Source: Hemiscyllium ocellatum (lineage: Eukaryota). Taken from it: a stretch of DNA of 64,000 nucleotides. Position 1 is the first letter of the stretch, and every line of letters starts with the position of its first letter. The position numbers and the translations under genes were made by a program. Shown piece after piece: positions 10,348 through 61,608 of the stretch. The notes under the pieces are model-generated. The model saw only the letters and a program-made list of their open reading frames with translations, had not been told where the DNA came from and did not search any database. The stretch covers positions 30,857,877-30,921,876 of the forward strand of contig NC_083429.1 in assembly GCF_020745735.1 (NCBI RefSeq), written 5' to 3'.

Positions 10348-10378
<31 letters not shown>

Positions 10379-13538: not shown

Positions 13539-14374
13539 TTAAAGCATTAACTCTGTTTCTCTCTCCACAGATGCTGCCAGATCTGCCATGTGTGTTCAGC
13601 ACTTTCTGCTTTTATATCAGATTTCCAGCATTTGCTGTATTTTGCTCTTATTTAAATGGTAATGATCCTTAGTCCATCATGTAAGGCACTTTGAAAAGCT
13701 GACAAGAAATTCCTCAGATGCTATTTGTCAGGTACATCCCAGCATTGGTTTTAAATGCTTAAGGATTGTTTAAAGAAGAAGAAAAAGTCTGCAATGTTGC
13801 ATAATTTGAAGGTGTTTCCAAAGATTAAGTTTGATCGGGGAACAATATGATAAATTTTGATTCCAGACAAGATATAAAAGGAAGTGTTTTCAAAATGTCA
13901 TATGTTCAACTTAAATGCATAATGAATTATGTCTTTGGAAATTACCATTGGTTGAATGAATGTCATGAATTTAGCTACAAGAGATAATTCAAATTAATCA
14001 TGAGGTGAACAAATGATTAATTTCTTTATCAATTAACTATTTGGCAAATATTAATTAGCACACTGAGTATGTCACAGCTTATTCTCAAATGGAGCCAAGT
14101 CAGTTTCAAAATGGTCTTGAACCAGCAGACAGGATAATGTTTAAACATGAAGGGTATCCCCAGCCAAAGTAACTCATTCTCAGTATTACGTGCAAGTTCA
14201 GTCTGGACTATGAGTTCATGTTCATGCCTTAACTTTCTTGTGCCGCTAATTAAAGGAAGCTTACAAAATCAAAAACCACAAACTAAAGAGGAATTGCTTT
14301 TCTGGGCAGGAGCGTTTTCCTTTGGACTGTGAGCCAATCCTGATAAAAGCAACAGTGTTGAAGAGACTACTGAC

Positions 14375-14669
14375 GTATAACATCTCATTTGGTCTCATCT
14401 GTTATTGGTTGTTTGAAAGTGACATATTTTTTCAGACACCTACAGACAGTGCTATGATGGGTTACTTAAGGGATGATCTCAAGTTTGCTGCTGGCAATGG
14501 AGTTGCAATTGACAGTAAAGGGTGGGCAGATATATTTCCGATAATTTTTGCTCCAACACAGGTCCAAGTAAAGTAGATATTCTCATGGTACACCCCCCAG
14601 ACAGAGCAGGTCAGTTAGATCTACATCCAGTAACCAAAGCACCATCCACACTGGAAACATCACGGAGTC
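14375..14669 (-). pseudogene. Inverted paralogous C2 exon 3 pseudogene
   Basis: Reverse complement aligns to 40282..40584 (LTC...FTWTC...LEIIP*V..H.TVCRC...TFKQP). It has a 1-nt deletion near 14615, TAA and TGA stops and a weakened donor (GTCAGT). Flanking introns are also homologous. Confidence 0.8.
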
Positions 14670-15734
14670 CTGAAAGAAAGGGAAAAAAAATCATGAATGT
14701 AATTACATATCCTGTGAAGTGTAATAATATCAAGTCCATTGAAGTTCAGGGTAACATTACTGGAGATTTACTGACAGTTTATGCAGTATTATGTCATTGC
14801 CAGACCAGGTGTGTCCTCAGAATGATTCACGAACTGTAAATGTACATAACTACATGAGCCTCTTTTGCTTTTTCAAGTATTGTAATTTAAAAACAACCAG
14901 CAGCCATGCAATGCTTAATTATTAAAGGAGGTCAGATGTTTGTTTATTGTAAACTATTGCTGAAAAGTGATTAATTAGAAAATGATACAGTTACCAACTA
15001 AAATACAGAAACAAAGATTAAAGACAGATCAATATAAAAGATACTGAACAAGATGGAAGTATGATTGGTCTGCTAATGTTACACACTTGCTCAAACATTC
15101 TCTTACTGAAGACAATGGCTTGAAAACTGGATCTCAGAAGTTAGTAACTGTCATGGTTTCTGTGGTCATATAACTGGTGGTAGCTTCCAAAGCTGAACTG
15201 AGCAGGTCAGATTGTGGGATGGTGGGAGTGAGAACTCCTTTGCTTTACTTTGTATAACAATGGACTGTACTGATTCAGAATCACAGAAACTCTACAGTAT
15301 AGAAAGATACCATTTGGTCCATTGAGTCTGCACTAACCCTCCAGTGGGTGAGACAAATCTTTCAGGCTTTCTTCTCTGAAGAAAGGTCATGGGACACAAA
15401 ACACCAACTCTGTTTACTCTCCACAGATACTGTCAAACTTGTTGAGTTTCTCTAGCAGTTTCTGTTTTTGATTCAGGCCTCCAGCAAATTAGACAGAAGA
15501 AAGAGGAACAGGAATAGGCATTCGTCACGACAAGCCTGCTCAGTCATTCAATAAGATCAAGGCTGATCTGACATTCCTCATGATTACCTCCCACCCTTTC
15601 CCTGTTACCTTTGATTCTCATACTAATCAACATCCTTACAAAAGAGAACCTAACTATCGCCCACGATTTTCAACCATCACTGATTTTGCTCATTATCATG
15701 CTATGGGTTGCTATTAATAATCAGTCAGCACAAA

Positions 15735-22616: not shown

Positions 22617-22665
22617 ATGCAGCAGCTGCTGAAACTGTTTTTCATTTTGCAAACAGCTGTTCGAG
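22617..22665 (+). CDS. Copy A leader exon
   Basis: Same 49 nt as the gene B leader; donor G|GTAAGA. Confidence 0.75.
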
Positions 22666-23232: not shown

Positions 23233-23577
23233 GTGAACCATTCATTGGAGAGGTGACTCAACCGCGTCTGCTCAGTGTCTTGACAGGAGAATCAGTCACA
23301 ATAAACTGTACATGGATTTATAATGGAACTAATCATGAATGGATCCATGCTAATTTCCAGAGGGAGCCACTACTGGGAAATAAGAACTCCTGCATTAAGA
23401 AGCTGACCTGTGTTCGCGATGTTACTCTGGGTAGTTTCGGTCGCTGTTTCACATCACTGGAGATTGAAAACGTTTCTATTGATCATTCTCAGAACAAATA
23501 TACCCACATGGTGAAGCTACCGAAAGTCTATCCTCCATTAGAGAGTAAAGGACAAGGAACAAGGTTGCAGATTTACG
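23233..23577 (+). CDS. Copy A Ig V-set exon; open, but F-strand Cys replaced by His
   Basis: 345 nt, 17 nt differences from 54498..54842 (hand count); YTHMV versus YICMV; splice sites intact. Confidence 0.85.
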
Positions 23578-26661: not shown

Positions 26662-27870
26662 GGGAATTGAATTGAATTGAATTTATTGTCATGTGTACTG
26701 TGGCACAGTCTTGCAAGCAATCCAGGTAGATCATAGAGTTAAGTAGCAAAAACAAAATACAGGTACAGGTGAATGTTAAGAGTTTGTCAGTCCATTCAGT
26801 ATTCTAACAACAGCACAGTAGGAATTGTTTTGAAACTAGCTGGTGCATGTGTTCAGGCTTCTGTACCTTTTCCCTGATGGTAGAGGTTGTAGAAACAAAT
26901 TGACAGGGAGGGATGGATCTTGGAGAATGTTGGCGACCTTTCCTTGACAACGGGCCTGGTAGGTGGGTTCTATAGATGTGGGGTTAGCCTTTGTGATCAT
27001 CCAGGCCGAGTTCACCACTCTCTGTAACCGTCTCCGATCTTGAATGGTACAGTTGCCATACCAGGTAGTGATACATTCTGACAGAATGGCACACCTATAA
27101 AAGTTGGCAAGGGTATTCGCCATCATGCCAACTTTCGTCAGCTGCCTGAGGAAGAAGAGACGTTGTTGGGCCTTTGTAACCTGTGCGTTCACATGAAGAG
27201 TCCTAGAAAGTTTGTTGTGGATGACCATTCCCAGGAACCTGACACTCTTCACTTGTTTCATCTCTGTGCTGTAAATGTGCAGGGGGGCATGAGTAACATC
27301 CCACCGAAAGTCACTAATAAGTTTCTTGGTTTTGTTGGCATTGAGAGCTAGGTTGTTCTCAGTGCACTGTTTTTCCAGGTCTTCCACCTCCCGTCTGTAG
27401 TCTGTTTCATCGCCATCTGAGATTCGACTGACTATGGTGGTGTCATCAGCGATGTAAATGGCATTAGTCTGGTATTTGGTGATGCAGTCATGGGTATACA
27501 GTGAGTACAGTAGGGGGTTGAGTACACACTCCTGGGGGACTCCAGTGTTGAGTGTTAGTGAGGATGAAATATTGTCCCCAGTCTTCACTGATGGTGGCTT
27601 GTGGGTCAGGAAACTGAGGATCCAGTTGCAGAGAATGGAGTTTAGTCCAAGGTCATTAAGTTTCGTAATTAGCCTTGAGGGGATAATAGTGTTGAAAGCT
27701 GAACTGTAGTCAATGACTAGGATTCTTAAGTAGTTGTTCTTGGTGTCAAGATGTTCTAAGGAGAAGTGAAGGGCATGTGATATGGCATTTGACGTGGATC
27801 TGTTGGTCCAATAAGCAAATTGGAGTGAGTCAAGAGTAGTGGAGAGACTGGAGTTGCTCTCTCTGGCAGA
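26662..27870 (-). mobile_element. Rex1/Babar-clade LINE, RT-containing 3' part
   Basis: LDSLQFAY..NRST, DYSSAFNTIIP, TGVPQECVLNPLLYSLYTHDC, IADDTTIV, NNLALNANKTK; (CAATT)n 3' tail. Confidence 0.85.
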
Positions 27871-27924
27871 CTGGCTTTCAATTCTCCCCAGACCATCAGC
27901 ACTCAGTATCTCAGGGTTCTTTTC

Positions 27925-28820
27925 ATAAGACCATAAGACCATGACACAAAGGAATGGAAGAAGGCCATTCAGCCCATTGAGTCCACTTCACCATTCAATC
28001 ATGGCTGATGGACATTTAAATTCCACTTACCTGCACTCTCCCCATATTCCCTTAATTCCTTGCGAGATCAAGAATATATCAATCTCTGCCTTGAAGACAT
28101 TTAACGTCCCAGCCTCCACTGCACTCTGTGGCAGTGAATTCCACAGGCCCACCACTCTCTGACTGAAGTAATGTCTCCTCATTTCCATTCCAAATTGACC
28201 CCCTCTAATTCTAAAGCTGTGCCCTAGATCCTAGTCTCCCTGCCTAATGGAAACAACTTCCCAGCATCCACCCTTTCTCAGCCATGCATTACCTTGTAAG
28301 TTTCTATTAGGTCTCCCCTAAACTTCTTACCTCTAATGAATACAATCCCAGAATCCTCAGCCGTTCATCATATGTTAGACTTACCATTCCTGCGATCATC
28401 CGTGTGAATCTCCGCTGGACACGCTCCAGTGCCAGTATGTCCTTCCTGAGGTGTGGGGCCCAAAATTGGACACAGTATTCTAAATGGGACCTAACTTAAG
28501 CTTTATAAAGTCTCAGTAGCACATCACTGCTTTTATATTCCAACCCTCTTGAAATAAATGACAACAAACCACGGACTCAACATGCAAGTCAACTTTTAGA
28601 GAATTCTGGTCTAGCACTCCTAGATCCCTTTGTACTTTGGCTTTATGAATTTTCTCACCTTTTAGAAAATTTTCATGCCTGTATTCTTTTTTCTGAAGTA
28701 CAAGCCCTCACATTTACTCAAGCTGAATTTCATCAACCATTTCCTGGACCACTCTCCTAAACTGGCTAAATCTTTCTGCAGCCTCCCCACCTCCTCAGAA
28801 TTACCTGCCTGTCCGCCTGA
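27925..28820 (-). mobile_element. CR1 3' fragment
   Basis: CATAAGAC tail repeats and CR1 RT C-terminal similarity. Confidence 0.7.
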
Positions 28821-29860: not shown

Positions 29861-31764
29861 AAACATAAAACATAAACCATTACAGTAGACCAACACAGTA
29901 CAGGCCCTTCGGCCCTCGCTATTGCACCAACCTGTGAAAACAATCTGAAGCTCATGTAACCTACACTATTTCATTCTCGTCCTTACACCATTAGTAACTG
30001 AACTCCAGGATGAATATTTCCCATCAACCACCATCCTCTTCTCCTTTCAGCTAGCCAATTTCTGATCCAAACCACTAAATCCCCCTCAATCTCATGCCTC
30101 CGTATTTTGTGCAATAGCCTACTGTGGAGAACCTTATCAAATGTCTTACTGAAATCCATATACACCACATCAACCGTTTTACCCTCACCGACCTTTCTGG
30201 TCACCTTCTCAAAGAACTCAATAAGGTTTGTGAGGCACAACTTACTTTTCATGAAACCATGTTGACGATCCCTAATCAACTTATTCATTTCTAGATGATT
30301 ATAAATCCGATCTCTTTTAACCCTTTCCAACACTTTACCCACAACTGAAGTAAGGTTTACTGGTCTATAATTACCAGGGATGTGTCTACTCCCCTTCTTG
30401 AACAAGGGGACAATGTTTGCTATCCTCCAGTATTCTAGCACTATTCCTGTAGACACAGACGCCATAAAGATCAAAGCCAAAAGCTCGGCAATCTCCTCCG
30501 TGGTTTCCCAGAGAATCTTCGGATAAATCCCAAACAGCCCAGGGAATTTATCTATTTTTACACTTTCCAGAATTGTTAATCCCTTCTAGTCTAGTTTCCT
30601 GTATCTCAGTATTCTCCTTAACAATATTGTCTTTTTCTATTTTGAATATTAATGAAAAATATTCATTTAGTGCCTCCCCATCTCCTCTGACTCTACGTAC
30701 AACTTCCTACTACTATCCTTGATTGGCCCTAATCTTACTCTAATCATTCTTGTATTCCTGTTATACCTATAGAAAGCCTTCGGATTTTCCTTGCTCCTAT
30801 TTGCCAATGACTTCTCACGTCCCGTCCTGGCTCTTCTTAACTCTCTCTTTTGGTCTTTCCTGGATAACCGAGTACCTTAACTGAGCCATCACATCTCATC
30901 CTAACATGAACCTTCTTCTTCGTCTAGACAAGTGACTGCACTTCCTTAGTAAACTATGGTTCCCATGCAGCACAACTTCCTCCCTGCCTGACCAGTACAT
31001 ACTTACGAAGGATCCGCAGGAGCTGTTCCTTGAATAAGCTCCACATTTCAATTGTGCCCATCCTTTGCAGTTTACTTTCCCATTCTATGCATCCTAAAGC
31101 TTGCCTAATCACATTGTAATTGCCTTTCCCCCAGCTGTAACTCTTGCCCTGTGATATACCTATCCCCTTCCATCACTAAAGTAAACCTAACCGAATTGTT
31201 GTCACTATCACCAAAGTGCTCACCTACCTACAAATCTAACACGTAACTGGGTTCATTAGCCAGTAAAAAACCTAATGTGGCCTCGCCCCTTGTTGGCCTA
31301 TCTACATACTGTGTCAGGAAACCCTCCTGCACACATTGGACAAAAACTGACCCATCTAAAGTAGTTGAACTATAGCAGTCCCAGTTAATATTAAGAAAGT
31401 TAAGGCCCTAATAGCAACCAGCTGTCACTCTCGCTCCTATCAAGGATCATCTTTGCCAACCTTTCCTCTACATTCTGGAACTATTCAGAGGTCTACAGAA
31501 AACTCCCAACAGGGTGATCTCCTTTCCTGTTTCTAATCTTAGCCCATACTGCCTCAGTAGATGAGTCCTCAAACGTCCTTTCTGCAACTGTAATGCTGTC
31601 CTTGATTAACAATGCCACATCACCCCCATTTTAAACATTTTCTCTGTTCTTACTGAAACATTGAAATCCAGGAACCTGCCATAACCATTCCTGTCCCTGC
31701 TCTACCAATGTCTCTGAAATGGCCACAACATCGAAATCCCAGGTACCAACCCATGCTGCAAGTT
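29861..31764 (-). mobile_element. Internally deleted CR1 LINE (end of endonuclease, RT, tail)
   Basis: WRIANIVPLFKKG..PGNYRPVNLTSVVGKVLE, QHGFMK, CLTNLIEFFE, VDVVYMDFSKTFDKV; abrupt jump to the 3' tail near 29985. Confidence 0.85.
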
Positions 31765-31849: not shown

Positions 31850-32092
31850 AGTTGGAGGAAAGTATAGAGGAGATGTCAGAGGCGGGTTCTTTACACAGAG
31901 AGCTGTGAGAGCATGGAATGCGCTGCCAGCAGCAGTTGTGAAAGCAAGGTCATTGGGGATACTTAAGAGACTGCTGGACATGCATATGGTGACTGAAATT
32001 TGAGGGTGCATACATGAGGATCAATAGTTGGCACAACATCATGGGCTGAAGGGCCTGTTCTATGTTGTACTGATCTATATTCTATATTCTAT
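31850..32092 (+). mobile_element. CR1 3' fragment
   Basis: FFTQRAVRAWNALP; (CTATATT)n tail. Confidence 0.7.
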
Positions 32093-32094
32093 AA

Positions 32095-35000
32095 GGAGAT
32101 ATGTACCTTAGACTATTGTCAGAAAAGGTAAGAGTAACAGGAATTCACGGTAAAACATGAAGAGCTTAATTATTTGGAGTGAGGTTAGAGGGTCCAGTGA
32201 AGATTGGAGAAGTTATAGTAGGAATATGGACAAACTCTCAGCTCCAGGAAAACAATTTGTCTTTGCTAATGATATAGCTGATTCACCAGCAGGAGTACTG
32301 CCTACTATGGTCATAAAGCCAATGGAAACTCAGACAACTGAACTATTGCAGGACACACGTCCTGGGATTTTTCCTGACTATGTGGTAACAAGGTCACAAA
32401 GTCACCAGTTGAAACAGGAGAGATTAAAGAGCACAGATAAGAAAGTTGAAGTGGAATTAACAGAGACCCTGTTTGATCAAATAGTTGACACAAACCAGGA
32501 GCAGATGGATGACAGAGCAGACATCTTTAGATCAGATAAATTAACTGAGTTATAACAGAAAGATGAAAATTTAAAGCGATTGTAGCAAAAGGCACACAGA
32601 AAATGAATGTGAATGTATCACTGAATGAAGTCTTAAGGAGGAAATGGAGACCATCACATATTCAGGCGGATAAGAAATAGGCAGATGTTCATCATGTCAG
32701 ATTGCCAGTGGGCTGTAGAAACGAGGTTTTGCGAGTGGCGCTTGAGCTACCACTACGGGGTCATTTAGGAATGAGAAAAACTCAAGCTAAAATGCAAAAA
32801 CATTGTTAGTGGCCTGGACTGCACAAGGATGCAGTTGAATTTTGCCAGATGAGTCATACATATCAGGTAATTGAAAAACCACAGGCAGTAATAAAACCCA
32901 CAACTTTAATACTTTTTACACGGTTCTTAATTGATTGTGCAGGACCATTACCTCAAGCAAAACAATGGGAATCAGAATTTGTTAACAATAATGGATGTAT
33001 CCACTAGATTTCCCGAGGCCGTTCCATTATGCATTATCACAGCTAAAAGGATTGTAGAGGAATTACTCAAGTTTTTCACTAGATACGGAGTACCCACAGA
33101 GATACAAACAGATCAAGAGTCAAACTTTAAATCAAAATTATTCAAGGAAGTTATAGATAGACAGGAATAAAACAATCTAAATCTGCCATGTGTTATTGAG
33201 AATCGCAGGGCGCACTTGAAAGTTGTCTTTGGACATTAAAGACAAAGTTGAGGGCTTATGATCAAGACTTTCCAGGAGATTGGGATAAGACAATTCCATT
33301 TGTACTTCTTGTGATCAGAGATGCACCAAATAAATCAATTAAATTCAGTCCATTTGAATTAATTTTTGGGCATGAAATGAGAGGAGAGCTAAAATTGATT
33401 GAGGAGAAATTGATAAGTCAGAATTCAGAAACCACATATTTGGACTATGTGTCAAATTTTCAGGAATGAGTGGAGGAGTTGGGGGAGTGGGGGAGTTGGC
33501 TGGACAGTATTTAAAAGCCTCACAGCATACAATGAAATGGGAAGCAGAAAACAATATTTCCAATTTTGCTATTGGTGATGAGGTGTTAGTGTAAATTCCA
33601 GTAGTAGGTGAACCTTTAAAAGAAAGGTTTAGCGGACCTTATCAAGTCAAAATGAAGTTAAGTGGTGAACTATTTGATAAGGACTCCAAACAGAAAGAAA
33701 TCTCACAGAGTGTGTCATGACAATATGCTCAAAAGGTATTTTGACACAGAACGAAAGCAAGAGGAGAATGTGTTATTGGTTGCAACATAGAGGGAAGAAT
33801 CAAGTTCAGAGCATTCTGAATTGGACAAGCCTCAAAATAAATTGGACAATGAGGAAATTATCAAAAATTGGGATAAATTATTGAGTTAACTTAGAGAGGA
33901 AAATCAAAATTACCTGAAAGACTTATTACTATTACACTGGGAGATACGTGGAATTAAGCTGGGAAATAGATATAACAGATGCTGCTCCAATTAAGCAACA
34001 TCCCAATAAGCATAGCCCTCTAAAGTTGATACAGGTTCAAAAGGAGTTTGAATGCATACTACAAGACAACATAATTGAAGTGAGTTACAGTGACTGGAGC
34101 TCACCTACAGCAGTGGTGTCAAAACCAATTGGTACCCGATGGTTATGTGTAGACTCTCGGAAAGTCAACGCAGTTACAAAGGCTGATGCATATCCAATTC
34201 TACATTTGGAAGACTGTGTTGAAAAGGTGGGATGATCAACTTTTATTTCTAAGTTGGACTTGCTCAGAGGTACCTTTGTCAGAAAGAGTGAAGGCCAAAT
34301 GGACTGTACCAGTTTAAAGTCATGCCATTTGATATTAAAAAAATGCCAAACATATTTCAGAGACTAAGCAATGAGGTCATTGCTGGATTACCCAACATTG
34401 TCGTATGTATCGATGACCTGGTGATTTTTAGTCACACATAGAAAGAACATTTGCAACATTTATCAGAATTGTTTGATCAACTTCAGGAAGAAGGCTTGGT
34501 GATAAACCTGGCTAAAAGTGAATTTACCAATGCGGCCCAAGTCACCTTCCTGGGCCATGTTGCAGGACATGGTCAAATGGCCCCATGGGATGCAAAACAA
34601 AAGAAATTGGGAAATTCCTGTAGCATCGACATAAAGAGATCCCTATGATTCCAGGGATTGAGTGGATTTTATCGAAAATGCTTACCAAATGTTAGTAGTG
34701 TGGCTGCTCCACTCACTGAAATGCTAAAGAAAGGCAAGAAGTTTCAGTGGACAGCAGATTGTCAGAAGTCATTTGACAGCCTGAAAGCTGTGAAAATCAC
34801 TGCCCTGGTGTTAGCCACACCCAGTTACACAAAGCCATTCAAGGAGGCTATTGATTGCAAGTGATGTTGGTGTGCTGCTCACTTGCAAGAAGACAACGAG
34901 AAGATAGAAAGGCCTATTGGGTATTTCTCCAGGAAATTGAACATTCATCAGCAAAAATATTCAATGATTGAGAAGGAGACGCTGAGCTTGGTGTTGGCAT

Positions 35001-36020
35001 TACAACATTTTAATGTCTATGTTACCAGTAACATATCTGAGACAATCATATACACTGACCATAACCCATTGAAGTTTGTGAGGGAATTTAAGGACAAGAA
35101 TGCCAGACTGTTTAGATGGAGCTTGTTGTTACAGCTATTCAATTTGAAAATTGGGCACGTAGCAGGTCAGGAAAACATGATTGCCGACATGTTGATGAGG
35201 CTTTAATGAGAAACAGAGGCATTTGATGGCAGGAGTACAACAGACTGAAACAAAATGTAGCTGTGCGTGTTTATAGTTAATATAATGTATATGTCTGTTG
35301 TAGAGTACTAACAATTTAAGACTAAGGAGTTTAAAATGAAGCTATCTTTGGATATTGATGGTTCACTTTTTTGAAGGGGGAGGTGTGATGATGCTGCTCC
35401 TTTAACAAACTTATGTTGCTCTTGGTATTTTTTCAGAAAGGGCATGAAAGACACAGATCCTGAAAAGTCTTAAGTTGAAGGGTTTTAGGACCAGTTTGAA
35501 AATAGCTAACAAATACTGCCTCAGGCAGCAGGCTTTCAAGTTATTGAAAAAATAACACACTTGTATAATGAAAGGGGAATGGCCTGTTCTCCCAAAACAG
35601 CTCCTCTGTGGTTTGGTTTGGTTTTTAGCAGAATTGCTGGAAAGCTGCTGGAGCCAAAAAAGCAGGTCCAGGCTGTTCCTCCTCTCTCTCTCTCTGACAT
35701 CTCTCCTGTAAGACCCTGTGTTTGATTTTACATTTTGTGCCAAGGGGTCTTTATTGAGATTGTTACAAGTATTTGGAACAGCATGATTAAGTTGGGATAA
35801 TCTGTTGAGCTTTCGGATCGATTAAGTCCTTCTGTATTCTGTTTGTGTTTCATTCGGTAATCCTGTAAATAAATTCTATGTTGTTTACAACTAAGTGGTC
35901 TGACCAATTGCATGTTTCCTGGGATATCCACATTAAACCTGCTTAAAACAACTAGCAAAGTTAGGGTCTGGGCTACCCTCTTGAAATGCTTTGTGAAGGG
36001 TTCTGGCCTGGTCCATCACA
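32095..36020 (+). mobile_element. 5'-truncated Gmr1-like LTR retrotransposon (integrase-RT-RNase H order) with PPT and 3' LTR 35384..36020
   Basis: Integrase LTIMDVSTRFPEAVPL...EIQTDQ.SNF (about 32.9-33.3 kb) precedes RT PIKQHP...WSSP...RWLCVD.RKVN and IDDLVIFS (about 34.0-34.5 kb) and RNase H RPIGYFSRKL...EKETL...YTDHNPL (about 34.9-35.2 kb). PPT GAAGGGGGAGG; LTR TGTGATG...CATCACA. Confidence 0.9.
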
Positions 36021-36029
36021 GAAGGTACA

Positions 36030-40281: not shown

Positions 40282-40584
40282 AACTCCCTGAAATTTCCAT
40301 TGTAGATGGTAGTTTGGTTGCTGGGCAAAAGTCTATCCTGACCTGCCCTGCCTAGGAGTTGGACTCTGAGAACATCTCCTTTACCTGGACCTTTAGTGCA
40401 ACAAACATGATGACAAACATCACTGTCCCAAACCTGAAAGGAATGGTTAATGGTAAACCTGTTGCCACCAGTGAATTTGAGATCATTTCTCAAGTGGCTG
40501 ACCATGGAACTCTCTGTACATGTCAGATAAATCATATTACTTTCAAAAAGCCAGTAATAAAAAAGATCAATCTAGATGTTATGT
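40282..40584 (+). pseudogene. Paralogous C2 exon 3 with in-frame TAG
   Basis: 303 nt, 43 differences from 57624..57926 (hand count); TAG at 40353..40355 where gene B has CAA; splice sites intact. Confidence 0.85.
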
Positions 40585-41568: not shown

Positions 41569-41889
41569 ATGTTCCACAATTTCTCACAATAACATACTGG
41601 TTAAACCGCAGTGATATTTACCATACAGGGACCAGTAACTCCATCACTGTCAATACAAATTCATCACTGCAATTGAGATGCTCTGCATATAGTAACACTG
41701 CCTCGACTGTGATCTGGCTAAAGGATGGGGAAAAGTCCACTGAAATGGTACAAATGGCAACTGGATTACACAGCTCAAAATTACAGAAAATTAATTTCCA
41801 GTTTGAAGATGCAGGAATCTATTGGTGTATGACGAACAAAAGTTATGGTTGGAGAAATGCAAGTGTTTGGTTGAAAACTGTTCAAAAAG
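41569..41889 (+). pseudogene. Paralogous C2 exon 4; open frame, part of the disabled copy
   Basis: Acceptor TTTAG; LRCSAYSN...TVIWLKDG...DAGIYWC...SYGWRN; donor G|GTATGT; about 50% aa identity to gene B exon 4. Confidence 0.8.
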
Positions 41890-42602: not shown

Positions 42603-42704
42603 GTGACATGTGGTTGTGGATTTTGATTGGGTGATCCATTGCTGTTGCTGCATTCATTTTGATTCTAACCACACTAAGCTGCTTAGTTAATTGCTGAATA
42701 ACAG
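42603..42704 (+). pseudogene. Paralogous TM exon with two in-frame TGA codons
   Basis: Acceptor TTTCTTTCAG, donor G|GTAACG, 102 nt and phase 1 like the gene B TM exon. Reads GDMWLWILIG*SIAVAAFILILTTLSCLVNC*IT; TGA at 42632 and 42695. Confidence 0.75.
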
Positions 42705-44514: not shown

Positions 44515-46515
44515 ATGTAAGTTAGCTCGCTGAGCTGGAAGGTTTGTTTTCAGACATTTCAGCACCATACTATGTAACATCATCAGTTACAAGTCTCTGT
44601 TGAAGTGCTGGTGGCATGTCCCACCTCTCTATTTATAGGTCTTGGTTTCTTAAGGTGGGTCATGTCATTTCCAGTTCTTTTTTTTAAGGAAGGTCGATAG
44701 GATCGAAATTGATGTGTTTATTGATGAAGTTCTGGTTAGACTGCCATGCCTCTAAGAATTCTTGTGTGTGTCTTTGTTTTGCCTACCCTAGGATGTGTGT
44801 GCTGACCTAGTGAAAGTGGTGGCCTTTTTTGTCTGTATGTATGGAAACCAGTGATAGTAGGTCATGTCTTTCGGTGGCCCATTGGTGTTCGTGTATCCTG
44901 GTGGCAAGTTCCTTTTTTGTTTGTCCACTGCAGTGTTTTTTACAGTTCTTGCATAGTATCTTGTAAATGACGTTAGTTTTGCTGGTTGTATCTAATGGAT
45001 CCTTTAGGTTCATTAGTCGCTGTTTACGTGTGTTGGTAGGTTTGTAGGTGACCATGATGCTAATGGGTCTCAGTATTTTGGAAGTCATTTCTGATATGTC
45101 TTTGATGTAAGGTAATGTGGTTTTCCTTTTTGGTGTGTCTGCTTATTTGGGTTTGTTTCTGAGGAATTGGCGGATTGTGTTTATTGGGTATCCATTTTTC
45201 TTGAAAACATTGTACAAATATTTTTCTTCTGCTTTTTATAGTTCTTGGGCACTGCAGTGCGATATAGCTTGTTGAAATAATGTCTTGATGCAACTCCGTT
45301 TGTGGGTGTTGGGATGATTGCTTCTGAAGTTAAGTATTTATTGTTTTTCTGCAGATGCCGGTTTGAAGCTCTCTGTTAACTGTATGTTCAACTGTCATGT
45401 CTAGGAGCGGGAATCTGTTGTCGTTCTCCTCCTCTTTTGTGGGTTTCATGCCTGTCAGGATGTTGTTGATGGTGTTGTATGTTTCCTCTAATTTGTTCCA
45501 TTTTGTGATGACAAAGGTGTCATCCATGTAGCGGACCCAAAGTTTGGGTTGGATAGATGGGAGGGCAGCTTGTCAAAGTCTCTGCATTACTGCTTCTGCT
45601 ATGGGCCCTGATATTTGTGATCCCATGTGTGTTCCGTTGATTTGGTTGTAGGTTTTGTGATTGAATATGAAGTGGGTGGTAAGGCACAGGTCAACTAGTT
45701 TGAGGATGTTGTCTTTGCTGATGAAGTTGGTGCTGTCTTGTGTTTGTGGTCCTGGTTTTCCTAGTGGTGATGCCAGTGTTTCTTTGGCCAGGTCGATGTT
45801 AATTGATGTGAAAAGGGCTGTTACGTCAAAGGAGACCATTGTTTTGTCCTCTTCTGTCTTGGTGTCTTTGATGGTATTCAGGAATTCTGGGGTGGAGTGA
45901 ATGGAGTGGCATGAGTCTTCAATTAGATGCTTTAGTTTTTGGTGGAGTTCCTTGGGTAGCCTGTGCGTTGGTGAACCAGATAGGGAGGCTATTGGTCTTG
46001 GGGGTGGTGGTGGGGGGTGGGGGGCAGGTTTATGTATTTTTGGTAATCTGTAGAAGCGTGGATTATTGGACCCATCTGGTTTCATATTTTGGAAGTCTGT
46101 CCTGTTTAATTCTTCTGATTTTTTTAAGTACTGTTAGAAAGGATGAGATTCTGTTTTGTAGTTGTGGGGGTTGGGTTATCGCCACCTGCTGGTAAGTGTC
46201 AGTATCTGCAAGCAGAGCATTTGCCTTTTTAAGATATTTAAAATAACGGTCATGCATCCCTTATCTGCAGGAGTTATTACAACGATTTTGTATTTTTTAA
46301 CTCTTTCTAAGGCTTTATTTTCTTGAGCATTAAGTGTGTTTCCTTCCTTTTCTCGGCCTAACGTATGTGCAATAGCTTGTCTTATGACCTGCTGTGTTTC
46401 GCCTGAAAGACCATTATTTTTTAATATGGATTCAAATGCTGCGAGGAAGTCCTTTTTACTCACGTCTTTGTAATTGTAGCTTAATCCTCTGAGTAGGACT
46501 GCTTTTTTCTGTATC
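44515..46515 (-). mobile_element. Penelope-like element (third family), disrupted and internally deleted
   Basis: ITPADKG.MTV.LN, RFYRLPKIHK, MVSFDVTALFTSI, NGTHMGS.ISG.IAE, YMDDTFVI, NVIYKI.CKNC and TRIHEHQ motifs. Confidence 0.85.
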
Positions 46516-46913
46516 AGGAAGCAATATCCTGCTGAACTTGTGAACAGTTTTGCTGTAATTCTCAGATTTTGGCGTTGAGTTTTCAAATATTCATCCAGTG
46601 GAAACAGTTTATATTTATCTACCCTATCTTTTCCTCTTAAAATCTTGAAGACTTCAAAGACTATAGGAACAGGTTGATTGTATTGTTCACACCAAGTAAA
46701 GATGATAGTGTTTAATTGAACTTTGAGTGTTACCTCATTATTCGTACTAATTCTCATATCTGAATATTAGAGAGATGTATCAATAGTAAAAGGTTATATT
46801 TTACACAGTAATTCCATTGTTAGAGAATGAGAAAAAGGTTTGATGCAAAATTCCCACTAGGTAAACATCAACAATTTCTTTTGTTAATAATACTTGTGCT
46901 CAAGTTCAGAGAA

Positions 46914-53879: not shown

Positions 53880-53928
53880 ATGCAGCAGCTGCTGAAACTG
53901 TTTTTCATTTTGCAAACAGCTGTTCGAG
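53880..53928 (+). CDS. Gene B exon 1, signal peptide (MQQLLKLFFILQTAVR-G)
   Basis: ATG at 53880, hydrophobic core, donor G|GTAAGA, phase 1; identical to 22617..22665. Confidence 0.8.
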
Positions 53929-56900
53929 GTAAGATGCTCTGCTCAGGACATTCACTCGGCGCTGGCGCTGTAGGGATAGGATTCCCCCTTTTCGGGTATT
54001 TCAGCTTCTCTATATAGTGTGGAACTGCAGAGAGAGCAAGTGAAACATCACCATGTCACTTGGACAATTTCTGCACTGTTCAAATATCCACATCATGGTG
54101 GTTGGGTTAAACCTCCTGTGTAAAAGTTACATTCCAGTTGAGACGATACTTTGGATACTGATCGTGAATCCTAATGCTCATAGGATTCAGAATATTTAAA
54201 GTTTTTTTTAAGATCTTCAGAAAAAGGGTGGCCTCTCTTTGCAAATTGTTCAAATTGATAGCAGCAGCTTCAGAGAACTGGAAACAAAGATCTCCAAAAG
54301 ATTTTGAATCTTGTTTCATTAAAAGAAGCAAATTCAGACCAGGGGAAAAAAAACACCATTTTAACACAGAAAACTAGGAAACAAACCACCGCAAATCAGA
54401 GAGAAGACACATAAAATTATCATGTTTTTCATAGATGATCCAATGGGTAGAAAATCTCAAATGATGTTGATAATGGTGAACTGCTTTATTCCATCAGGTG
54501 AACCATTCATTGGAGAGGTGACTCAGCCGCGTCTGCTCAGTGTCTTGACAGGAGAATCAGTCACAATAAACTGTACATGGATTTATAATGGAACCAATAA
54601 TGAATGGATCCATGCTAATTTCCAGAGGGAGCCACTACTGGGAAATAAGAACTCCAGTAATAAGAAGTTGACCTGTGTTCGTGATGTTACTCTGGGTAGT
54701 TTCGGTCGCTGTTTCACATCACTGGAGATTGAAAACGTTTCTTTTGATCATTCTCAGTACAATTATATCTGCATGGTGAAGCTACCGAAAGTCTACCCTC
54801 CATTAGAGAGAAGAGGACAAGGAACAAGGTTGCAGATTTACGGTAACGTATTTACATGACAAGTAACAAATAGAAAAACAGTGATAGTACTGAGTTTTCA
54901 TTCATTACGGACACAGCAACATTTGCATCAAGCAATAAGAACATTCAATATCAGACAAAACTATTCAAACAAGCTATTGCTAGCTCAAAAAATGCAGGAA
55001 GTATTCATTGCATGTTTGTAATATTGTTCTCTGAATCAGGTTTGTGATATCTCACCACTGTGAAATTAATGGGGATATATAAAGTTAAGGTTCAGGTTAT
55101 AGTCCAACAGGTTTATTTGGAAGCGACATTTAAACCAACACCGGCATCTCCAAATCATGGAGATATATAGGCCATCACTGATATAAATTTTGCATTTCTG
55201 CCACATTCATTACCTATTCTATTTATTCCATAAGGTATTACCTCCCTCGATTTTATGGAAATTCCTTAAGCTTTATACCTGTTTATCTTTATATGCTCAT
55301 GTAGCTTTTCACAACTTTGTCATCCATTGCTTTGCAATTCCATATAAAATTGAGTACATCTGAAGTTGTTCTACTATTTCAAATGAAAACCAATTATACG
55401 GAATCGATATTTTTTTAACACAGCTAGTAAATGTTGAAAATAGAAAGCCAGTTATTCTGTAAAAGAGGTAGATCTATGGTTTGTTTTAAACCCTTCATCA
55501 AAACCAAATGACATATCAATAGACTACAAATAAATTGGACAAAGCTGTGATAAACTATAAGGATATATCAAATAGAGATTTCAGAAAGTGATTGTGAGAA
55601 TTTCTGTGTAAAGAATGCAATTTCAGGCTAAAAAGGGTTTTCGCAGGAATCACACCCTGTTTTTTGTACTTAATGACATTATATAATATTGATCTAGACA
55701 CAGGAGAGCAATGCCCTAAAGAATAACAAAAAAAGTGTGCAACAATATGTCTTATTATGTCACATATGAAATGAGAAACTTAGTTTGCAGAGAAACAATA
55801 AATTTTGAGGATAGTTTTGTTGATATTATTCACAGTCATTTATGATTCTCAAAAAATTATTTGGGATAATTATTTTCCTCTTGAGTTTCATACCTTGCAG
55901 TGTACTATTTGTGTTGTTATTTTTCTGCTAGTTGTTAATTGACACTCCATAAAAATATTTTATTAATTACATTGTCCAAAGTTATTGCACAAGAAAAGCT
56001 CATACTCCATTAACCTATCAACCATGTGCTCACTGATCAACCCTACTTCCCAATTCTTCAATGCCAAGAATTCTAAATGTTCATTCCTTTTTTCAAATCC
56101 CTCATTGACCAGACCCTCTCTATCTCGGTGATTTTCTCCATCCCAACAATACTCAGATTCTTACATTTCACTTGTTTACCTTGAGTTGCTTTGCCTCACC
56201 ATTGGCAGCTGTATTTTCAACTGCCCAGAATCTGAATTCTAAAGATTTCTCCCCAAACGTCTTATTTTTTAATCTCTCCTCTATTAAAATTCATTCAAAA
56301 CAAACCTCTTTGGTGAAGCTAATGATCTCTTGGCTTCATAGCTATATGCCTCAGTGTCAAATATGTCTAGTATTATTCTGTGAGATACATAGGAGGTTTT
56401 GCTTTATTAAAGGTGCTGTATTATTATAAGTGGGAATAATGTGAAAACCCCTATTGAAATCAATGAAAACACCTGGAAAGAAGCCCACAATACTTGACTC
56501 ATGATTATGACATGTGAATAAAAAGAGCATAAACTCACACACCACCAACTAAACGTTAGCTCAGGACTCTGAATCACATATAGTTTTGTGTCTTGACCCA
56601 CTGTTCCATTAGTGACCGATGTGTGATATGTTTTTGGTCTGCAGACCAATTAGTGCTGAGGATATCCTCTGAAGGCATAGCAACAATGTAAAATTTGAAA
56701 GAGACTCTGCCTGACAGACTATCATTGTGCAGTGGGAGCCACAAAGAGATTGGTGCTCAAAAAGAGATGAAGGGTTGGCTCTATGATGCACTAGGATGAT
56801 GCCTGAGCTGGTAGTTGAATTCTACTAAAGGACAGATTTTTTTCAACACTAAGTAACATTGATGAAGCCTTACATATAACATGTGATACTGAGGCAAATT

Positions 56901-59900
56901 GTAAATTACACACAATTTCTGTCCAATGATATTATTGATTGGAAGCCAGTAGCAGTATCATGAAGATTTCCAATAGCTTCAGTGTCTTCAGCTCTAACTC
57001 CTCTAAATGGCCTTGGACATTCCTGTATGTGTGCCTGTTGTTGATGTCACTACAGTAGAACTACAATATGTAGCCCCAGGGAAATGGGCCCAAAACAGCT
57101 GTTCACAGGCAAACATGAAGAAATGTTACAAAGAGTGACTGAAATATACAATCGACAATTTTGGAAGCATGTTACATTGACCTGGTGCTAATCTCAGCAA
57201 GGAATCTGAAAATGCGTTGATCAACATAAACTCATTTAGGAGGAGAAAGTGAGGTCTGCAGTTGCTGGAGATCACAGCTGAAAATGTGTTGCTGGAAAAG
57301 CGCAGCAGGTCACGCAGCATCCAAGGAACAGGAAATTCGACATAATGCACTATTGAGTTGTCTTACAGTGGCATGACAGTTACCTTATAAGTAAAAGAGA
57401 GGATAGGGATGTGGTATGTGAGTCATTCTGACCAGACAATTGCTATCAAAAAATTGCACTGAAAGCTCCTGACACAGCAGCAAGGTAAAATGATATTAGT
57501 GTAATTCTCTAACACACATTTTGATTTTTGATTCCTTTAACCTAGACAAAAAGCTACTTAACTACAGATGTGTCACTATTTTACCAAAATGACAAATTGT
57601 GTTTCTTTTCTTCTCTATCTCAGAAATGCCTGAAATTTCCATTATTGGTGGTAGTTTGGTTGCTGGACAAAAGTCTGTTCTGACCTGCTCTGCCCAAGGG
57701 TTGTACTCTGAGAATATCTCCTTTACCTGGACCTGTAATGGAATAAACATGATGACAAACATCCCTGTCCCAACCTTGAAAGGAATGGTTCATGGTAAAC
57801 CTAATGCTACCAGCAAATTTGAGATCATCCCTCAAGTGATTGATCATGGAACTGTCTGTACATGTCAGATAAATCATGTTACTTTTAAACAGCCATTAAC
57901 AGAACGGATCAAACTAGATGTTAAGTGTGAGTATGATCTTTAGCATTGTTACCATTTCACAAAAGGTTATGATAAATATATTTACTTTAGATTTTGTCTT
58001 CCTCTTTTTATCTCCTCATCAGTCTCTGCTTACAACTGTGCCATACCCCATACTGTATTGTGAATTTCCCCCGTGTCCGTTTGTCTGTGGTTCCAGATCA
58101 AGTCCCTTCACACTGTTTTGCCTCGTACTAAAGTATTTCTGAATATGCCTTCCATCACCTGACCCATCAAAAATGCCAGTGTAACAGCTTCGTGCTTATC
58201 ACCAAATTTCAGTAATGTCTGTCCACTCACATCTCTGGCATGTTTTGCCCTTTATCTTTATTACCCCTCTTATCTATCCCGTAAAAGCTCCATGCTCTCT
58301 CACCTTTCAAACCTCCACTTATTTTATTGAAACAGAGAAAACAGGAACAAGAGTAGGCCACTGAGCTTGCTTTGCCATTCAATAATCCCTTCAAAAGCTT
58401 TTTGCACTGAGCAGTTTCTCATCTTTGATGATTTTGACCTTCATTGCATTCTTGACCTTTCTCCACCGATTTCACTGCCCTCATGTTGTCTGTTAGCCTT
58501 TCAATTCTGTATATTCCACAATCCATATTCACAGTTGCCAGTCACACTTTCCTGTCTTATGTAACCTCCCTATTTCCCTATCTCGATCACAGGCAATGTA
58601 ATCTCATATTATTTACTTGTATCGCACAATATGTCCACCTTATTTCCACTTCCAGTCTGGTAACCCAATCCTTCTTTTATGGAGAAACGTTCACTTTCGG
58701 TATTGCAATGGCAGTTCCAACTCCTCATTGTCCAAACTTTGTCCTTACATTATTTATCTATTTATGCAGCCAAAAGTCTGATCAGTTATTCCTTCAACTA
58801 TGCCTTTGATGATTATCTTCTCAATACTGTTTTCCACCTTGGTGGTTTCGACAAAGCACCTTCACTGCTTTAAATCCAAAAGGTACAGGTACAAACACAT
58901 AAAATGCACAATTTGTTCAGCTATTCATTGTTAAATGTGATGGCGTCACCATTTCTCAAAAATCTACGTGTCTTCCAATTCCCTTTCTTCTGCGTCAAAC
59001 TATGTCCATCTTTCATATTGCTCCTTGTTTGAACTTTTTCAATTGGGTTTCAATGCCACAGCATGGAATTAAGCCGAATGACAGTCACAAATAACATCGT
59101 TTGTATCTCTCACTCTGGTGTACTCCTCCACTTCAACCTTGTCAACCTTCATGAAGCATGTGACAGCAGCCAGCCACACTAGACTCCTCAAATAGCTTTC
59201 CTCTTTTAGCTAGGTTAGTGTAACTGCCTTCACTTATGCTCACTTGTATCTGTTCTACACCATTATTTCTGGTATTCTCATGAATCTATCTTTGAATTTC
59301 TCCCATCTCTCACCGACACTGCTGACATTATCCTGAGAAACAATGTTAACTTCAAATGTATGCTAACAATATCCAAATTTGGATTGCCATCGCTCACCTA
59401 ACTCCCCCGTGTCCATTTTTTTTTAGTGGTCTACATATCTGAGCTCCAGTTCTGAAAGGGCTGCAATAACCTCGAATTAAAAATTTGAAAGACTTGATTC
59501 CAAGTTTATTAAATTCCATCTATCTTCCCTGATCATTGCCTCATTTTGTTCTATTTTATGCTGACAAGAGTCAGCAGTCCACTCCTGTATCCTTTCCATC
59601 AGAATGACATCTTACTCACAGACTGGTAATATTGTCCATCTCTACTATATATATATATATATATATATATATCCTAACCACACCAAGTTCCACACTCCCA
59701 TGGTGTCACTGCTTACTAACTTTCTTTGGTTTCTAATTCGCCAATCTCTTGATTTTAAAATTCTCATCCTTGCATTCCACTGACTCCGCAGCCTTGTTTC
59801 ACCCCAGCTTTACAATCTCTTACAGCTCTACATCCCTCTAACTTTACCCTCTCCAACCCATAATTGATGCAAAGTCTGCAAGATCACAGAATCATAGAGT

Positions 59901-60407
59901 CATGCAATACAGAAGAGGGCCTCCATCAAGTCTGCACTAGCAAAAAAAATCTATGCTAAATCTTAACTCGTCCCACTTTCCAGCACTAGATCCATAGCCT
60001 GGAATGTTTGAAATTTCAAGTGTTCATCCAAATACTTTTTCAAAGTGCTTTACAAGATTATCTACCTCAACTGCCATCCCAGGTAGTGCAGGCTTCCACT
60101 ACCTTCTAGTAAAAACAAAAATTCCTCAAATCCCTTCTGAACTTCTGCATATTGCCTAAAAAATGGTCCCCTTCTTACTAACATTTTAACTAATCTGAAC
60201 AGCTGCTTTCTATCTGCTCTGTCACTGCCCCTCATAATCTAGCTAGTGTGCTTCCATTTAAACCTGTCGGACTGTAACCTGGTGTTGTGTGATTTTTAAC
60301 TTTGTACCCCAGTCCAACACCGGCATCTCCAAATCATGACCTCATAATCTGATACACCTTATATATCTTGTAGCTGTTAAAGTATGGAATTCCCTCAATG
60401 AACACCC

Positions 60408-60454
<47 letters not shown>

Positions 60455-61608
60455 TTAAGATAACCCTGTCAATCTGCTTCTTTGAACACATTTTTGGGTA
60501 TTGTTCCTTATACTTTCTTCCCTGGCTCAGTCGTTATGTTTGTCTGATTGGACTTCTGTAAAGCAATTTGAAATGTTTTCCTTTTATAGATGCATTATGT
60601 CAATGAAGAATCTTGTTAATTGGCCAGAATGTACCTGCATGTGTGAGAGTAATTATTTATACAAAAAATTAAGTTTGTATTTTCTTTACGTACAGATGGG
60701 CCACTGGAACCAACAATAATGTACAAGTTGAAAGACACTTACCATGTGAAGGCCAGTAACGGTGTAACTGTCCCCAGTAACTCACCTGTGGAACTGAGAT
60801 GCTCTGTGGATAGTAATCCAGTCGCCACTGTAATATGGCTGAAGAATGGAAAAAATTTAACTTCTATGATAGAAAACATAATTCGATTAAACAGTTCGAT
60901 ATTAACGATACCACACTTCCAGCCTAAAGATGCAGGAGTCTATTGGTGTGTGGCAAATAATAGCTATGGCTGGAGAAATGGCAGTGTTTCGTTGATGGCT
61001 TTTCAGAAAGGTAAGAATCCATGTACTAATGCAGGTGTAAATTGTTACAGAATAATTAATTTTACGAAATGGGAGCACAGATTGATTATAGTTAAGATTT
61101 TCTTTATTGATTTCAGAATTTGAAAAATTGAAATATTCATTTACTTAAAGCTGCAGTAAATAATACAGCCTATTCCAGATGGTTAAATATTTACAAATTA
61201 ATAACAATTGACTGTGAATCAATCAATTTTAGCTGTCTGTTTTTTCTGCAGTGGTTTGGAATGTAGTGCAAAGATAATAGACAACTAATATGATGCAGTT
61301 TTATCCATTAACTGCAGTTAGGCATAAAACTTGCAATGTTTTCTGAAGAAATTGACAATGTTTTGTCAAACAAAAATTTAAAGTTTGTAACCTTCTAACA
61401 TTCTCAGAAATATATCCAACCATTTCAAAGATTATACTTGATGTTTAAATTTTATGTCTGTTGCCATTCATCATTACTTCATTTTTAATTATTATTTCAT
61501 TCACAGATCATTTGTTGCTTTACATTCTATCTTCAATCATTGGTGTTATTGGGTTAATCGGTATGATAGCAATATACGTTTGTCTGATCTGGAAGAGACA
61601 ATTGAAAG
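53880..61608 (+). CDS. Gene B: IgSF type I membrane receptor, leader-V(J-like)-C2-C2-TM; join(53880..53928,54498..54842,57624..57926,60696..61010,61507..61608); cytoplasmic exons not located
   Basis: Five exons, each with AG/GT boundaries and phase-1 junctions (49+345+303+315+102 nt). They splice into one stop-free frame: MQQLLKLFFILQTAVRG-EPFIGEVTQPRLL...GQGTRLQIY-EMPEISII...DHGTVCTCQINH...-YGPLEP...LRCSVDSNP...DAGVYWC...-DHLLLYILSSIIGVIGLIGMIAIYVCLIWKRQLK. Confidence 0.85.
54498..54842 (+). CDS. Gene B exon 2, Ig V-set domain with J-like G strand
   Basis: Acceptor CCATCAG. B-strand Cys (INCTW), E-strand SLEIENV, F-strand YIC, G-strand GQGTRLQIY; donor G|GTAACG. Confidence 0.9.
55082..55156. 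mobile_element. 75-nt 5'-inverted Penelope terminus in gene B intron 2
   Basis: 13-nt TSD ATGG(G/A)GATATATA; ends in the family-1 terminus CCGGCATCTCCAAATC. Confidence 0.75.
57624..57926 (+). CDS. Gene B exon 3, Ig C2-type domain resembling Siglec domain 2
   Basis: Acceptor TATCTCAG; VLTCSA...FTW...PQVIDHGTVCTCQINH; donor T|GTGAGT; open frame. Confidence 0.9.
59646..59672. repeat. (TA)n microsatellite
   Basis: Direct reading. Confidence 0.95.
60241..60339 (+). mobile_element. 99-nt Penelope terminal fragment in gene B intron 3
   Basis: 11-nt TSD CCTCATAATCT; sequence matches the family-1 pLTR from AGCTAGTGTG to CATCTCCAAATC. Confidence 0.85.
60411..60452. repeat. (TC)n microsatellite
   Basis: Direct reading. 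Confidence 0.95.
60696..61010 (+). CDS. Gene B exon 4, Ig C2/I-type domain resembling Siglec domain 3
   Basis: Acceptor TACAG; LRCSVDSNPVATVIWLKNG...DAGVYWCVANNSYG; donor G|GTAAGA. Confidence 0.9.
61507..61608 (+). CDS. Gene B exon 5, transmembrane segment with no charged residue
   Basis: Acceptor TTCACAG; LLLYILSSIIGVIGLIGMIAIYVCLIW followed by basic KRQLK; donor G|GTAAAC. Confidence 0.85.

Follow-up and report, generated by a model that had tools for sequence, protein, structure and literature searches.

Siglecs occur as paired inhibitory and activating forms, as does the shark family described here, and their outer variable (V) immunoglobulin (Ig) domain carries an essential arginine on the F strand (Y-x-F-R). 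The Siglec V domain has no disulfide between the B and F strands, and has instead a B-E intrasheet disulfide and an interdomain disulfide between domains 1 and 2. Members of the SIRP family combine a VJ-type V domain with C1 domains, a multi-tyrosine inhibitory tail and paired activating forms, and SIRP-beta uses a lysine in its transmembrane segment. A VJ domain adjoining a C1 domain, as in UrIg, UrIg2 and SIRP, is the combination sought when the origins of antigen receptors are traced. UrIg has only C1-type domains after its V domain and only a secreted form, the UrIg2 of nurse shark has nine C1-type domains followed by a transmembrane and cytoplasmic region, and both form disulfide-linked dimers (PMC12227049). 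The VJ-beside-C1 arrangement was used in the work on both molecules (PMC12227049, PMC10751288). Here we describe gene B, located on the plus strand of a 64,000-nucleotide stretch of the Hemiscyllium ocellatum genome (NCBI RefSeq assembly GCF_020745735.1, contig NC_083429.1, positions 30,857,877 to 30,921,876 of the forward strand), designated the window. Gene B is probably an inhibitory member of a family of paired immune receptors found in sharks and rays, and a decayed activating-type partner, gene A, lies upstream of it.

Gene B and its relatives in sharks and rays

Gene B consists of five exons, which encode the leader, the V domain, a second and a third Ig domain and the transmembrane segment, and all of the exon junctions are in phase 1 (Table 1). 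The AG/GT bounds of the leader, V, domain 2 and domain 3 exons were verified, and a GT donor follows the transmembrane exon at 61609-61610, as read from the sequence. The spliced translation was identical at 371 of 371 residues to part of P0012, a 610-amino-acid H. ocellatum RefSeq protein named "sialic acid-binding Ig-like lectin 8 isoform X2". Gene B is already modelled in RefSeq, under a Siglec-8 name. The cytoplasmic exons are located past the 3' end of the window; the whale shark gene has its first cytoplasmic exon 35 kb beyond the transmembrane exon.

P0012 and its orthologues carry a tail with the motifs TIYAFV (IIYAFV in whale shark), NEYSNL, VSYADI, which is invariant, and SEYSVV. TIYAFV, VSYADI and SEYSVV are of the immunoreceptor tyrosine-based inhibitory motif (ITIM) or switch motif (ITSM) type and NEYSNL is ITIM-like, and the tail motifs are conserved through sharks and rays. 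The inhibitory form is represented by P0012, P0002, P0013, P0014 and others. Activating-type members, which have the same ectodomain with a transmembrane arginine and without the tail, were found in Heptranchias (P0023), Pristiophorus (P0024) and Scyliorhinus (P0028). The Heptranchias activating gene shares its strand with the inhibitory one and is located 9 kb upstream of it, and the window has the same order, with an activating-type gene upstream of an inhibitory gene on one strand. Inhibitory and activating receptor genes are thus paired in tandem in Heptranchias and in the window, where the activating copy has decayed. An Atlas search with the transmembrane segment and tail gave scores below 0.8, and these were to generic leukocyte transmembrane adaptors only.

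With the V domain as query, nine matches were obtained among 1.84 billion representative proteins. Seven were from elasmobranchs, comprising six clear relatives and a 154-amino-acid catshark fragment (expect value, E, 2.4e-4), and the others were an unnamed Logan sequence and a repeat artefact. P0007 (698 amino acids) is an exact tandem repeat of about 51 residues in which 14 stretches match the V query, each along a short N-C-T-W segment; rather than a relative, it seems to be an artefact of low complexity or of assembly. Family members were identified in the sharks Rhincodon, Stegostoma, Scyliorhinus, Carcharodon, Cetorhinus, Mustelus, Heterodontus, Heptranchias and Pristiophorus, and in the batoids Leucoraja, Rhinoraja, Narcine and Mobula. 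Further homologue searches yielded no close relatives outside sharks and batoids, and the sole match of the ectodomain profile outside the family was a wrasse Siglec-10-like protein. The receptor family is limited to sharks and rays. No non-family genes were found within 10 kb of the orthologous loci of whale shark, little skate and sevengill shark.

The automatic NCBI names for family members are Siglec-8/11/12/13/14-like, MAG-like and sialoadhesin-like. We found no description of the family in the literature on elasmobranch Siglecs, ITIM-bearing non-rearranging shark genes, skate MDIR, PRARP or the SIRP of cartilaginous fish. The gene is best filed in an elasmobranch family of its own, which consists of paired VJ-C1-I receptors, is undescribed and is misnamed in RefSeq. 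The original prediction, which was made from the DNA of this locus alone, had overlooked both the paired inhibitory and activating family and its misnamed RefSeq entries.

The predicted gene B product is a type I membrane protein with a split leader, a germline VJ-type V domain, a C1-set domain, an I-set domain, an uncharged transmembrane segment and an ITIM tail. Four points are inferred: that the V domain binds a ligand, that phosphatases are recruited, that an adaptor pairs with the activating form, and in which type of cell the receptor acts. The fast-evolving V head would bind a putative ligand by a route other than the canonical Siglec arginine, and engagement of the ligand would lead to phosphorylation of the tail tyrosines. 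The phosphorylated tail would then recruit SH2 phosphatases, and cell activation would be damped. The activating form, with the same ectodomain, a transmembrane arginine and no tail, is presumably paired with an adaptor that bears an immunoreceptor tyrosine-based activation motif (ITAM).

The V domain, the stalk and the competing assignments

The V exon of gene B encodes ...TINCTW..., ...YNYICMV... and ...RRGQGTRLQIY. The original prediction had described a V domain that keeps its F-strand cysteine (YIC), has methionine directly after Y-I-C and ends in a J-like GQGTRLQI in the same exon. Each of these features was found in the V exon, whose V and J-like parts are not separated by an intron, and the V boundary was revised, as the exon stops at 54842. 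The proposed replacement of the C-strand tryptophan by phenylalanine (ANFQR) was upheld by an alignment of 17 family members and by the family profile. In the alignment, ANFQRE of gene B corresponds to a near-invariant W-Y-R-x-S-P-G, and the tryptophan is present in 16 of 17 relatives, with phenylalanine in gene B; the family V profile pairs the canonical tryptophan with W-Y-Q-Q-R-P-G of a lambda light chain. A close relative, Chiloscyllium P0001, has phenylalanine at this position as well, and the residue is therefore not an assembly error. A single-sequence alignment had placed the canonical C-strand tryptophan at the invariant tryptophan of "NEW". This placement was rejected, since the family alignment and profile put the canonical residue five positions later.

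No recombination signal sequence heptamer was found in or beside the V exon of gene B. The V and J parts lie in one exon, the leader is split and a C1-set domain stands beside the V domain, and gene B thereby has the organization of a non-rearranging VJ-C1 receptor. Across the 17 family members, the canonical B-strand Cys25 and F-strand Cys91 are invariant, and so is an additional cysteine pair (LTC...GRC) that, like the extra pair of domain 2, is predicted to form a further disulfide. The absence of the B-F disulfide that marks Siglecs was therefore not observed in the family, and arginine follows Y-x-C in 0 of the 17 members. Pfam assigned the family V domains to V-set only. The Pfam profile of Siglec/CD22-type V domains (PF24518, Ig_CD22) matched none of the 17 at E<=0.1, as against scores of 46.5 bits for a trout and 44.6 bits for a wrasse Siglec-like protein.

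The family V profile was compared with solved structures and with the teleost proteins. Its top matches in the PDB were Ig lambda chains and T-cell receptor (TCR) V-alpha (37.8 bits, E 1.4e-8), a ranking that is biased toward antibodies because antibody chains dominate the PDB by number. The aligned regions cover framework region 3 (C-I-P-D-V..G-G-F in the family and G-V-P-D-R-F-S-G-S in the matches) and the J-like G-x-G-T. On the V domains of two teleost Siglec-like proteins the profile scored 5.5 and -0.7 bits, and BLASTP gave the V domain of gene B no aligned partner in the trout or wrasse protein. A model of the V domain alone had a predicted local distance difference test score (pLDDT) of 84. 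Its nearest Swiss-Prot folds were IGSF6, the V domains of TCR-gamma and TCR-alpha, NFAM1, PILR, Ig kappa V, NKp30, the heavy-chain V domain of horn-shark IgW and CD8-beta, and IGSF6, NFAM1, PILR, NKp30, CD8-beta and the TCR and Ig V domains were matched at E 5e-6 to 6e-5 with 14-24% identity. This Swiss-Prot search and the wide VIA-align search of the PDB gave generic Ig, TCR and I-set matches with no family prominent, and the Atlas search with the V domain was diffuse. Judged from its sequence, the outer domain is an antibody- or TCR-like V domain that lacks the Siglec sugar-binding hallmarks tested. The germline-joined VJ-type head without the Siglec arginine, as first proposed, was borne out by the cysteines and by the profile searches.

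The stalk had been described as Siglec-like and C2-C2. Domain 2 does carry PQVIDHGTVCTCQINH and domain 3 does carry LRCSVDSNPVATVIW, and the Siglec motifs that had been cited for comparison, CSVDS-x-P and H-H-G-T/N..-T-C, are visible in the trout and wrasse Siglec-like sequences too. BLASTP aligned domains 2 and 3 colinearly with domains 2 and 3 of the trout protein (28% over 192 amino acids, E 8e-12) and of the wrasse protein (26% over 185 amino acids, E 1e-7). The plain C2 assignment of domain 2 did not hold, because Pfam matched it to C1-set in 17 of 17 members (best E 5.9e-15) and to the related CD80-like C2-set_2 in 15 of 17 (best E 3.4e-8), with 30.7 bits versus 14.9 bits for gene B itself. 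The best PDB sequence matches of domain 2 were IgA constant domains, SIRP-gamma domain 3, UrIg2 (9dmx) and the beta-2 domain of major histocompatibility complex class II. Against a coelacanth B7-H6/SIRP-like protein, the family profile of domain 2 reached 45.9 and 52.9 bits for the two C1 domains, compared with 31.3 and 21.2 bits for domain 2 of the two teleost Siglec-like proteins. The trout second domain itself scored 37.6 bits on Pfam C1-set, and a C1-like character alone therefore does not exclude a Siglec-type stalk.

Domain 3 of gene B matched the Pfam I-set and Ig_3 profiles (57 and 50 bits) and reached only 12.9 bits on C1-set. It is generic: its family profile scored 30-38 bits alike on I-set domains of a receptor tyrosine kinase, of an NCAM-like protein from a coral, of a CADM4-like protein from a mollusc and of the teleost Siglec-like proteins. 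A model of the whole ectodomain (pLDDT 82) gave Foldseek matches to MAG Ig1-3, CD22 domains 1-3, CD33-type Siglecs, CADM1-4, Necl-4 and nectins that lay within two orders of magnitude in E-value, with SIRP-alpha and SIRP-gamma somewhat lower in the ranking. When the whole protein, the ectodomain profile or the domain 2-3 region served as query, word-indexed homologue searches returned few and weak matches outside the family, and they therefore could not rank Siglec, SIRP and CADM. These comparisons suggest that a Siglec-like stalk is plausible but not specific; receptors with a V, a C1-like and an I-set domain in general fit too, and CADM and nectin ectodomains matched equally well.

The affinities of domain 2 bear on the idea that the gene is an elasmobranch counterpart or close relative of SIRP in which the third domain was swapped for an I-set domain. 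Domain 2 matched SIRP-gamma domain 3 both as a single sequence (E 1e-5) and as a profile (58 bits), and its nearest Atlas cluster was SHPS1/SIRP, with a score of 0.96. SIRP-gamma also reached a template-modelling (TM) score of 0.60 for the whole ectodomain, the family is like SIRP in having four tail tyrosines, arranged as two pairs, and an alpha/beta-style pairing, and SIRP-beta1 V aligned end to end with the V domain, albeit weakly (E 0.18). The ectodomain is, however, not of the V-C1-C1 type, given its I-set third domain, and the Foldseek E-values place SIRP under MAG, CD22, CADM and nectin. No SIRP V domain appeared among the 60 best matches of the V profile, and the activating form has an arginine where SIRP-beta has a lysine. 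We consider a SIRP origin of this kind unlikely.

RefSeq naming implies that the protein is a true but divergent Siglec, in which case some residue other than the canonical F-strand arginine would mediate the binding of sialic acid by the V domain. Besides the catalogue names, the colinearity of domains 2 and 3 with the teleost Siglec-like proteins and the wrasse match of the ectodomain profile are consistent with this assignment, as are MAG Ig1-3, which was the best PDB Foldseek match of the ectodomain, and PILR, a sialic acid binder among the structural neighbours of the V domain. The tail pairs an ITIM with an xEYSxx motif, as do the tails of CD33-type Siglecs, and this was counted on the same side. 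Set against these points are the invariant B-F cysteines, the missing arginine after Y-x-C and the missing Ig_CD22 match in all 17 members (45-46 bits for teleost Siglec-like V domains), and V profile scores of at most 5.5 bits on Siglec-like V domains. Domain 2 is closer to true C1 domains than to the second domain of Siglec-like proteins, and the 60 best sequence matches of the V domain, like those of domain 2, include no solved Siglec chain. Overall, gene B lacks three tested features that define Siglecs and one that defines SIRP, and a divergent Siglec appears distinctly improbable.

An adhesion molecule of the nectin/CADM type (V, C1-like, I-set) rather than an immune receptor is a very remote prospect, since, for all that the domain order is identical, that CADM1-4 were the top Swiss-Prot Foldseek matches (E 1e-16) and that Necl-4 gave the best TM score (0.60/0.65), the tail has ITIM/ITSM motifs and is not of the adhesion type, activating forms with a transmembrane arginine exist, the V domain is fast-evolving, the genes are tandemly duplicated and homogenised, and the sequence profile scored <=-1.1 bits on domain 2 of an abalone CADM4-like protein.

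Assignment to a shark-and-ray family of paired receptors thus accounts best for gene B, and several observations weigh against it. The replacement of tryptophan by phenylalanine in the V core could weaken the domain, though Chiloscyllium shares the phenylalanine. The ITIM tail of gene B is known from the RefSeq model and from orthologues, outside the window. The RefSeq isoform X2 (P0012) also takes in the V exon of gene A, and the real transcript structure of gene B is therefore uncertain. Finally, the activating-type transmembrane segment was not found in batoids.

Gene A and the evolution of the gene pair

Gene A (22617-42697, plus strand) lies about 31 kb upstream of gene B and is a decayed activating-type partner, now a pseudogene. 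Its terminal exon was 68-74% identical to the activating-type transmembrane exons of P0023, P0024 and P0028. The possibility that both TGA codons of this exon are lesions was rejected, because the second (42695) is a normal stop, as in P0023. The features of both genes, a further relic of the family and other elements of the window are collected in Table 1.

Table 1. Features of the window, with coordinates counted from its first nucleotide.
Feature	Coordinates	Strand	Remarks
Gene B leader exon	53880..53928	+	MQQLLKLFFILQTAVR followed by a split Gly codon; GT donor; split leader, final signal residues encoded by the V exon
Gene B V exon	54498..54842	+	V-set, VJ-type; canonical Cys pair, extra LTC...GRC pair, Phe for C-strand Trp, J-like GQGTRLQIY
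Gene B domain 2 exon	57624..57926	+	C1-set; C-Q-I-N-H (C-x-V-x-H type motif); extra conserved Cys pair (W-T-C, V-C-T-C)
Gene B domain 3 exon	60696..61010	+	I-set/Ig_3; LRCSVDSNP...YWCVANNSYG
Gene B transmembrane exon	61507..61608	+	Uncharged transmembrane segment LLLYILSSIIGVIGLIGMIAIYVCLIW, then KRQLK
Gene A leader exon	22617..22665	+	49/49 nucleotides identical to the gene B leader
Gene A V exon	23233..23577	+	91% amino acid identity to gene B V; F-strand Cys replaced by His (codon 23505); frame open, splice sites intact
Gene A C1-set exon	40282..40584	+	73% amino acid identity to gene B; in-frame TAG at 40353
Gene A I-set exon	41569..41889	+	About 50-51% amino acid identity to gene B; frame open
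Gene A terminal exon	42603..42697	+	Activating-type transmembrane segment; TGA at 42632 at the position of the transmembrane arginine; natural stop at 42695
Relic C1-set exon of the same family	14351..14689	-	Frameshifted; about 71% nucleotide identity to the gene B exon
Retroelement-like long open reading frame	11455..12249	+
Retroelement-like long open reading frame	26836..27942	-
Retroelement-like long open reading frame	29983..30480	-
Retroelement-like long open reading frame	32157..35206	+
Retroelement-like long open reading frame	45573..46757	-
(TG/CA)n-rich stretch	10268..10778	both	Spurious long Cys/Val- or His/Thr-rich open reading frames
(TG/CA)n-rich stretch	12600..12974	both	Spurious long Cys/Val- or His/Thr-rich open reading frames

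In RefSeq isoform X2, the V exon of gene A (residues 18-132 of P0012; AG/GT intact, phase 1-1) is spliced before the V exon of gene B. The model is accordingly a protein with two V domains, the first of which is without the F-strand cysteine. The 17-kb intron between the V and C1 exons of gene A is packed with retroelement open reading frames. No V, I-set or transmembrane exons were found to accompany the relic C1-set exon on the minus strand.

Amino acid identity between genes A and B drops from 5' to 3' across the V, C1-set and I-set exons (Table 1). The block from the promoter to the V exon is 89.8% identical over 1471 bp, and the synonymous divergence (dS) between the two genes is 0.08 in the V exon and 0.80 in the I-set exon. 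This difference in dS, the identical leaders and the conserved 5' block fit a recent homogenisation of the leader-V block of gene A with gene B. The Heptranchias pair showed the opposite trend, with 59, 85 and 76% identity in the V, C1 and I-set domains, respectively. At the little skate (Leucoraja erinacea) locus (L002), one annotated gene span holds two tandem V-C1-I sets, at 11551-15993 and 30307-36585. The two copies are 87, 96 and 97% identical over the same domains, with a ratio of nonsynonymous to synonymous divergence (dN/dS) of 2.3 in V that is based on few changes, and no transmembrane exon was found at this locus for the first copy.

Between gene B and its whale shark counterpart, the V domain is the most diverged, with 57% amino acid identity compared to 75% for domain 2 and 70% for domain 3. 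The dN/dS ratio of this comparison is about 0.7 for the V and C1 domains and 0.37 for the I-set domain. These patterns are typical of paired receptors and suggest that the family may be under shifting ligand or pathogen pressure. The family is a clear example of paired-receptor dynamics in an early-branching lineage of jawed vertebrates: the head evolves fast, homogenisation acts at the level of exons, and one lineage has lost the activating partner.

The window as a whole is vertebrate DNA, in which introns are long and retroelement open reading frames numerous. The long reading frames listed in Table 1 resemble retroelements or reverse transcriptases (Y-I-D-D and A-D-D-T motifs), and such frames occupy introns and intergenic DNA.

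Comparison with known receptor systems

With this family, cartilaginous fish would gain a type of receptor that joins a germline-joined VJ domain and a C1-set domain to inhibitory tyrosine motifs and that has an activating twin. Counts of Siglecs in early vertebrates that rely on catalogue names (Siglec, MAG, sialoadhesin) would mislead, because the head of these receptors lacks the hallmarks of sialic acid binding. The VJ domain adjoins a C1 domain, as in UrIg and UrIg2, which would make the family relevant to the origins of antigen receptors (PMC12227049, PMC10751288). There is a slim chance that these receptors are a membrane-bound VJ-C1 lineage that survives from the stock behind the antigen receptors, with a V domain that is nearer to those of Ig light chains and TCRs than to that of any innate receptor and that adjoins a true C1 domain. 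If so, it would be the ITIM- and ITAM-coupled signalling counterpart of UrIg and UrIg2 in elasmobranchs, and one more candidate relative of the V exon that the RAG transposon invaded.

IGSF6, NFAM1, PILR, NKp30 and CD8-beta resemble the shark family in V fold, being mixed with TCR and Ig V domains among its nearest Swiss-Prot neighbours with none prominent, but they are without its C1 and I-set stalk. Nectins and the CADM (Necl) proteins share the V, C1-like, I-set ectodomain and gave the best Foldseek E-values and TM scores, whereas the shark family has signalling motifs in its tail, an activating pair, a range of one lineage and a fast-evolving V domain. Siglecs and the shark family both have a V, a C1-like or C2 and an I-set domain, a transmembrane segment and a tail with tyrosine motifs, and MAG, CD22 and CD33-type Siglecs are among the best folds for the whole ectodomain. 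The motifs CSVDSxP and HHGT..TC are common to the family and to domains 2 and 3 of the teleost Siglec-like proteins, at 26-28% identity. Unlike Siglecs, the shark family has B-F cysteines, a J-like G strand, no F-strand arginine and no Ig_CD22 match in its V domain, and its domain 2 fits C1-set better than it fits the second domain of Siglec-like proteins.

The similarities to SIRP are a non-rearranging VJ-type V domain directly before a C1-set domain, a domain 2 that matches SIRP-gamma and the SHPS1 Atlas cluster, a multi-tyrosine inhibitory tail and activating partners with a charged transmembrane residue. In contrast to SIRP, the third domain is I-set and not C1, the charged residue is arginine instead of lysine, and the V domain has no specific sequence affinity to SIRP V. 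UrIg and UrIg2 are likewise elasmobranch molecules with a single-exon VJ, a split leader and a C1-set domain adjoining V (PMC12227049), and the domain 2 profile matched the C domains of UrIg2 (PDB 9dmx) with an E-value of 6.6e-21 over three stretches. The 60 matches ranked highest by the family V profile do not include the UrIg2 V domain, and the shark family differs from both molecules in its I-set third domain, its ITIMs and its activating partner.

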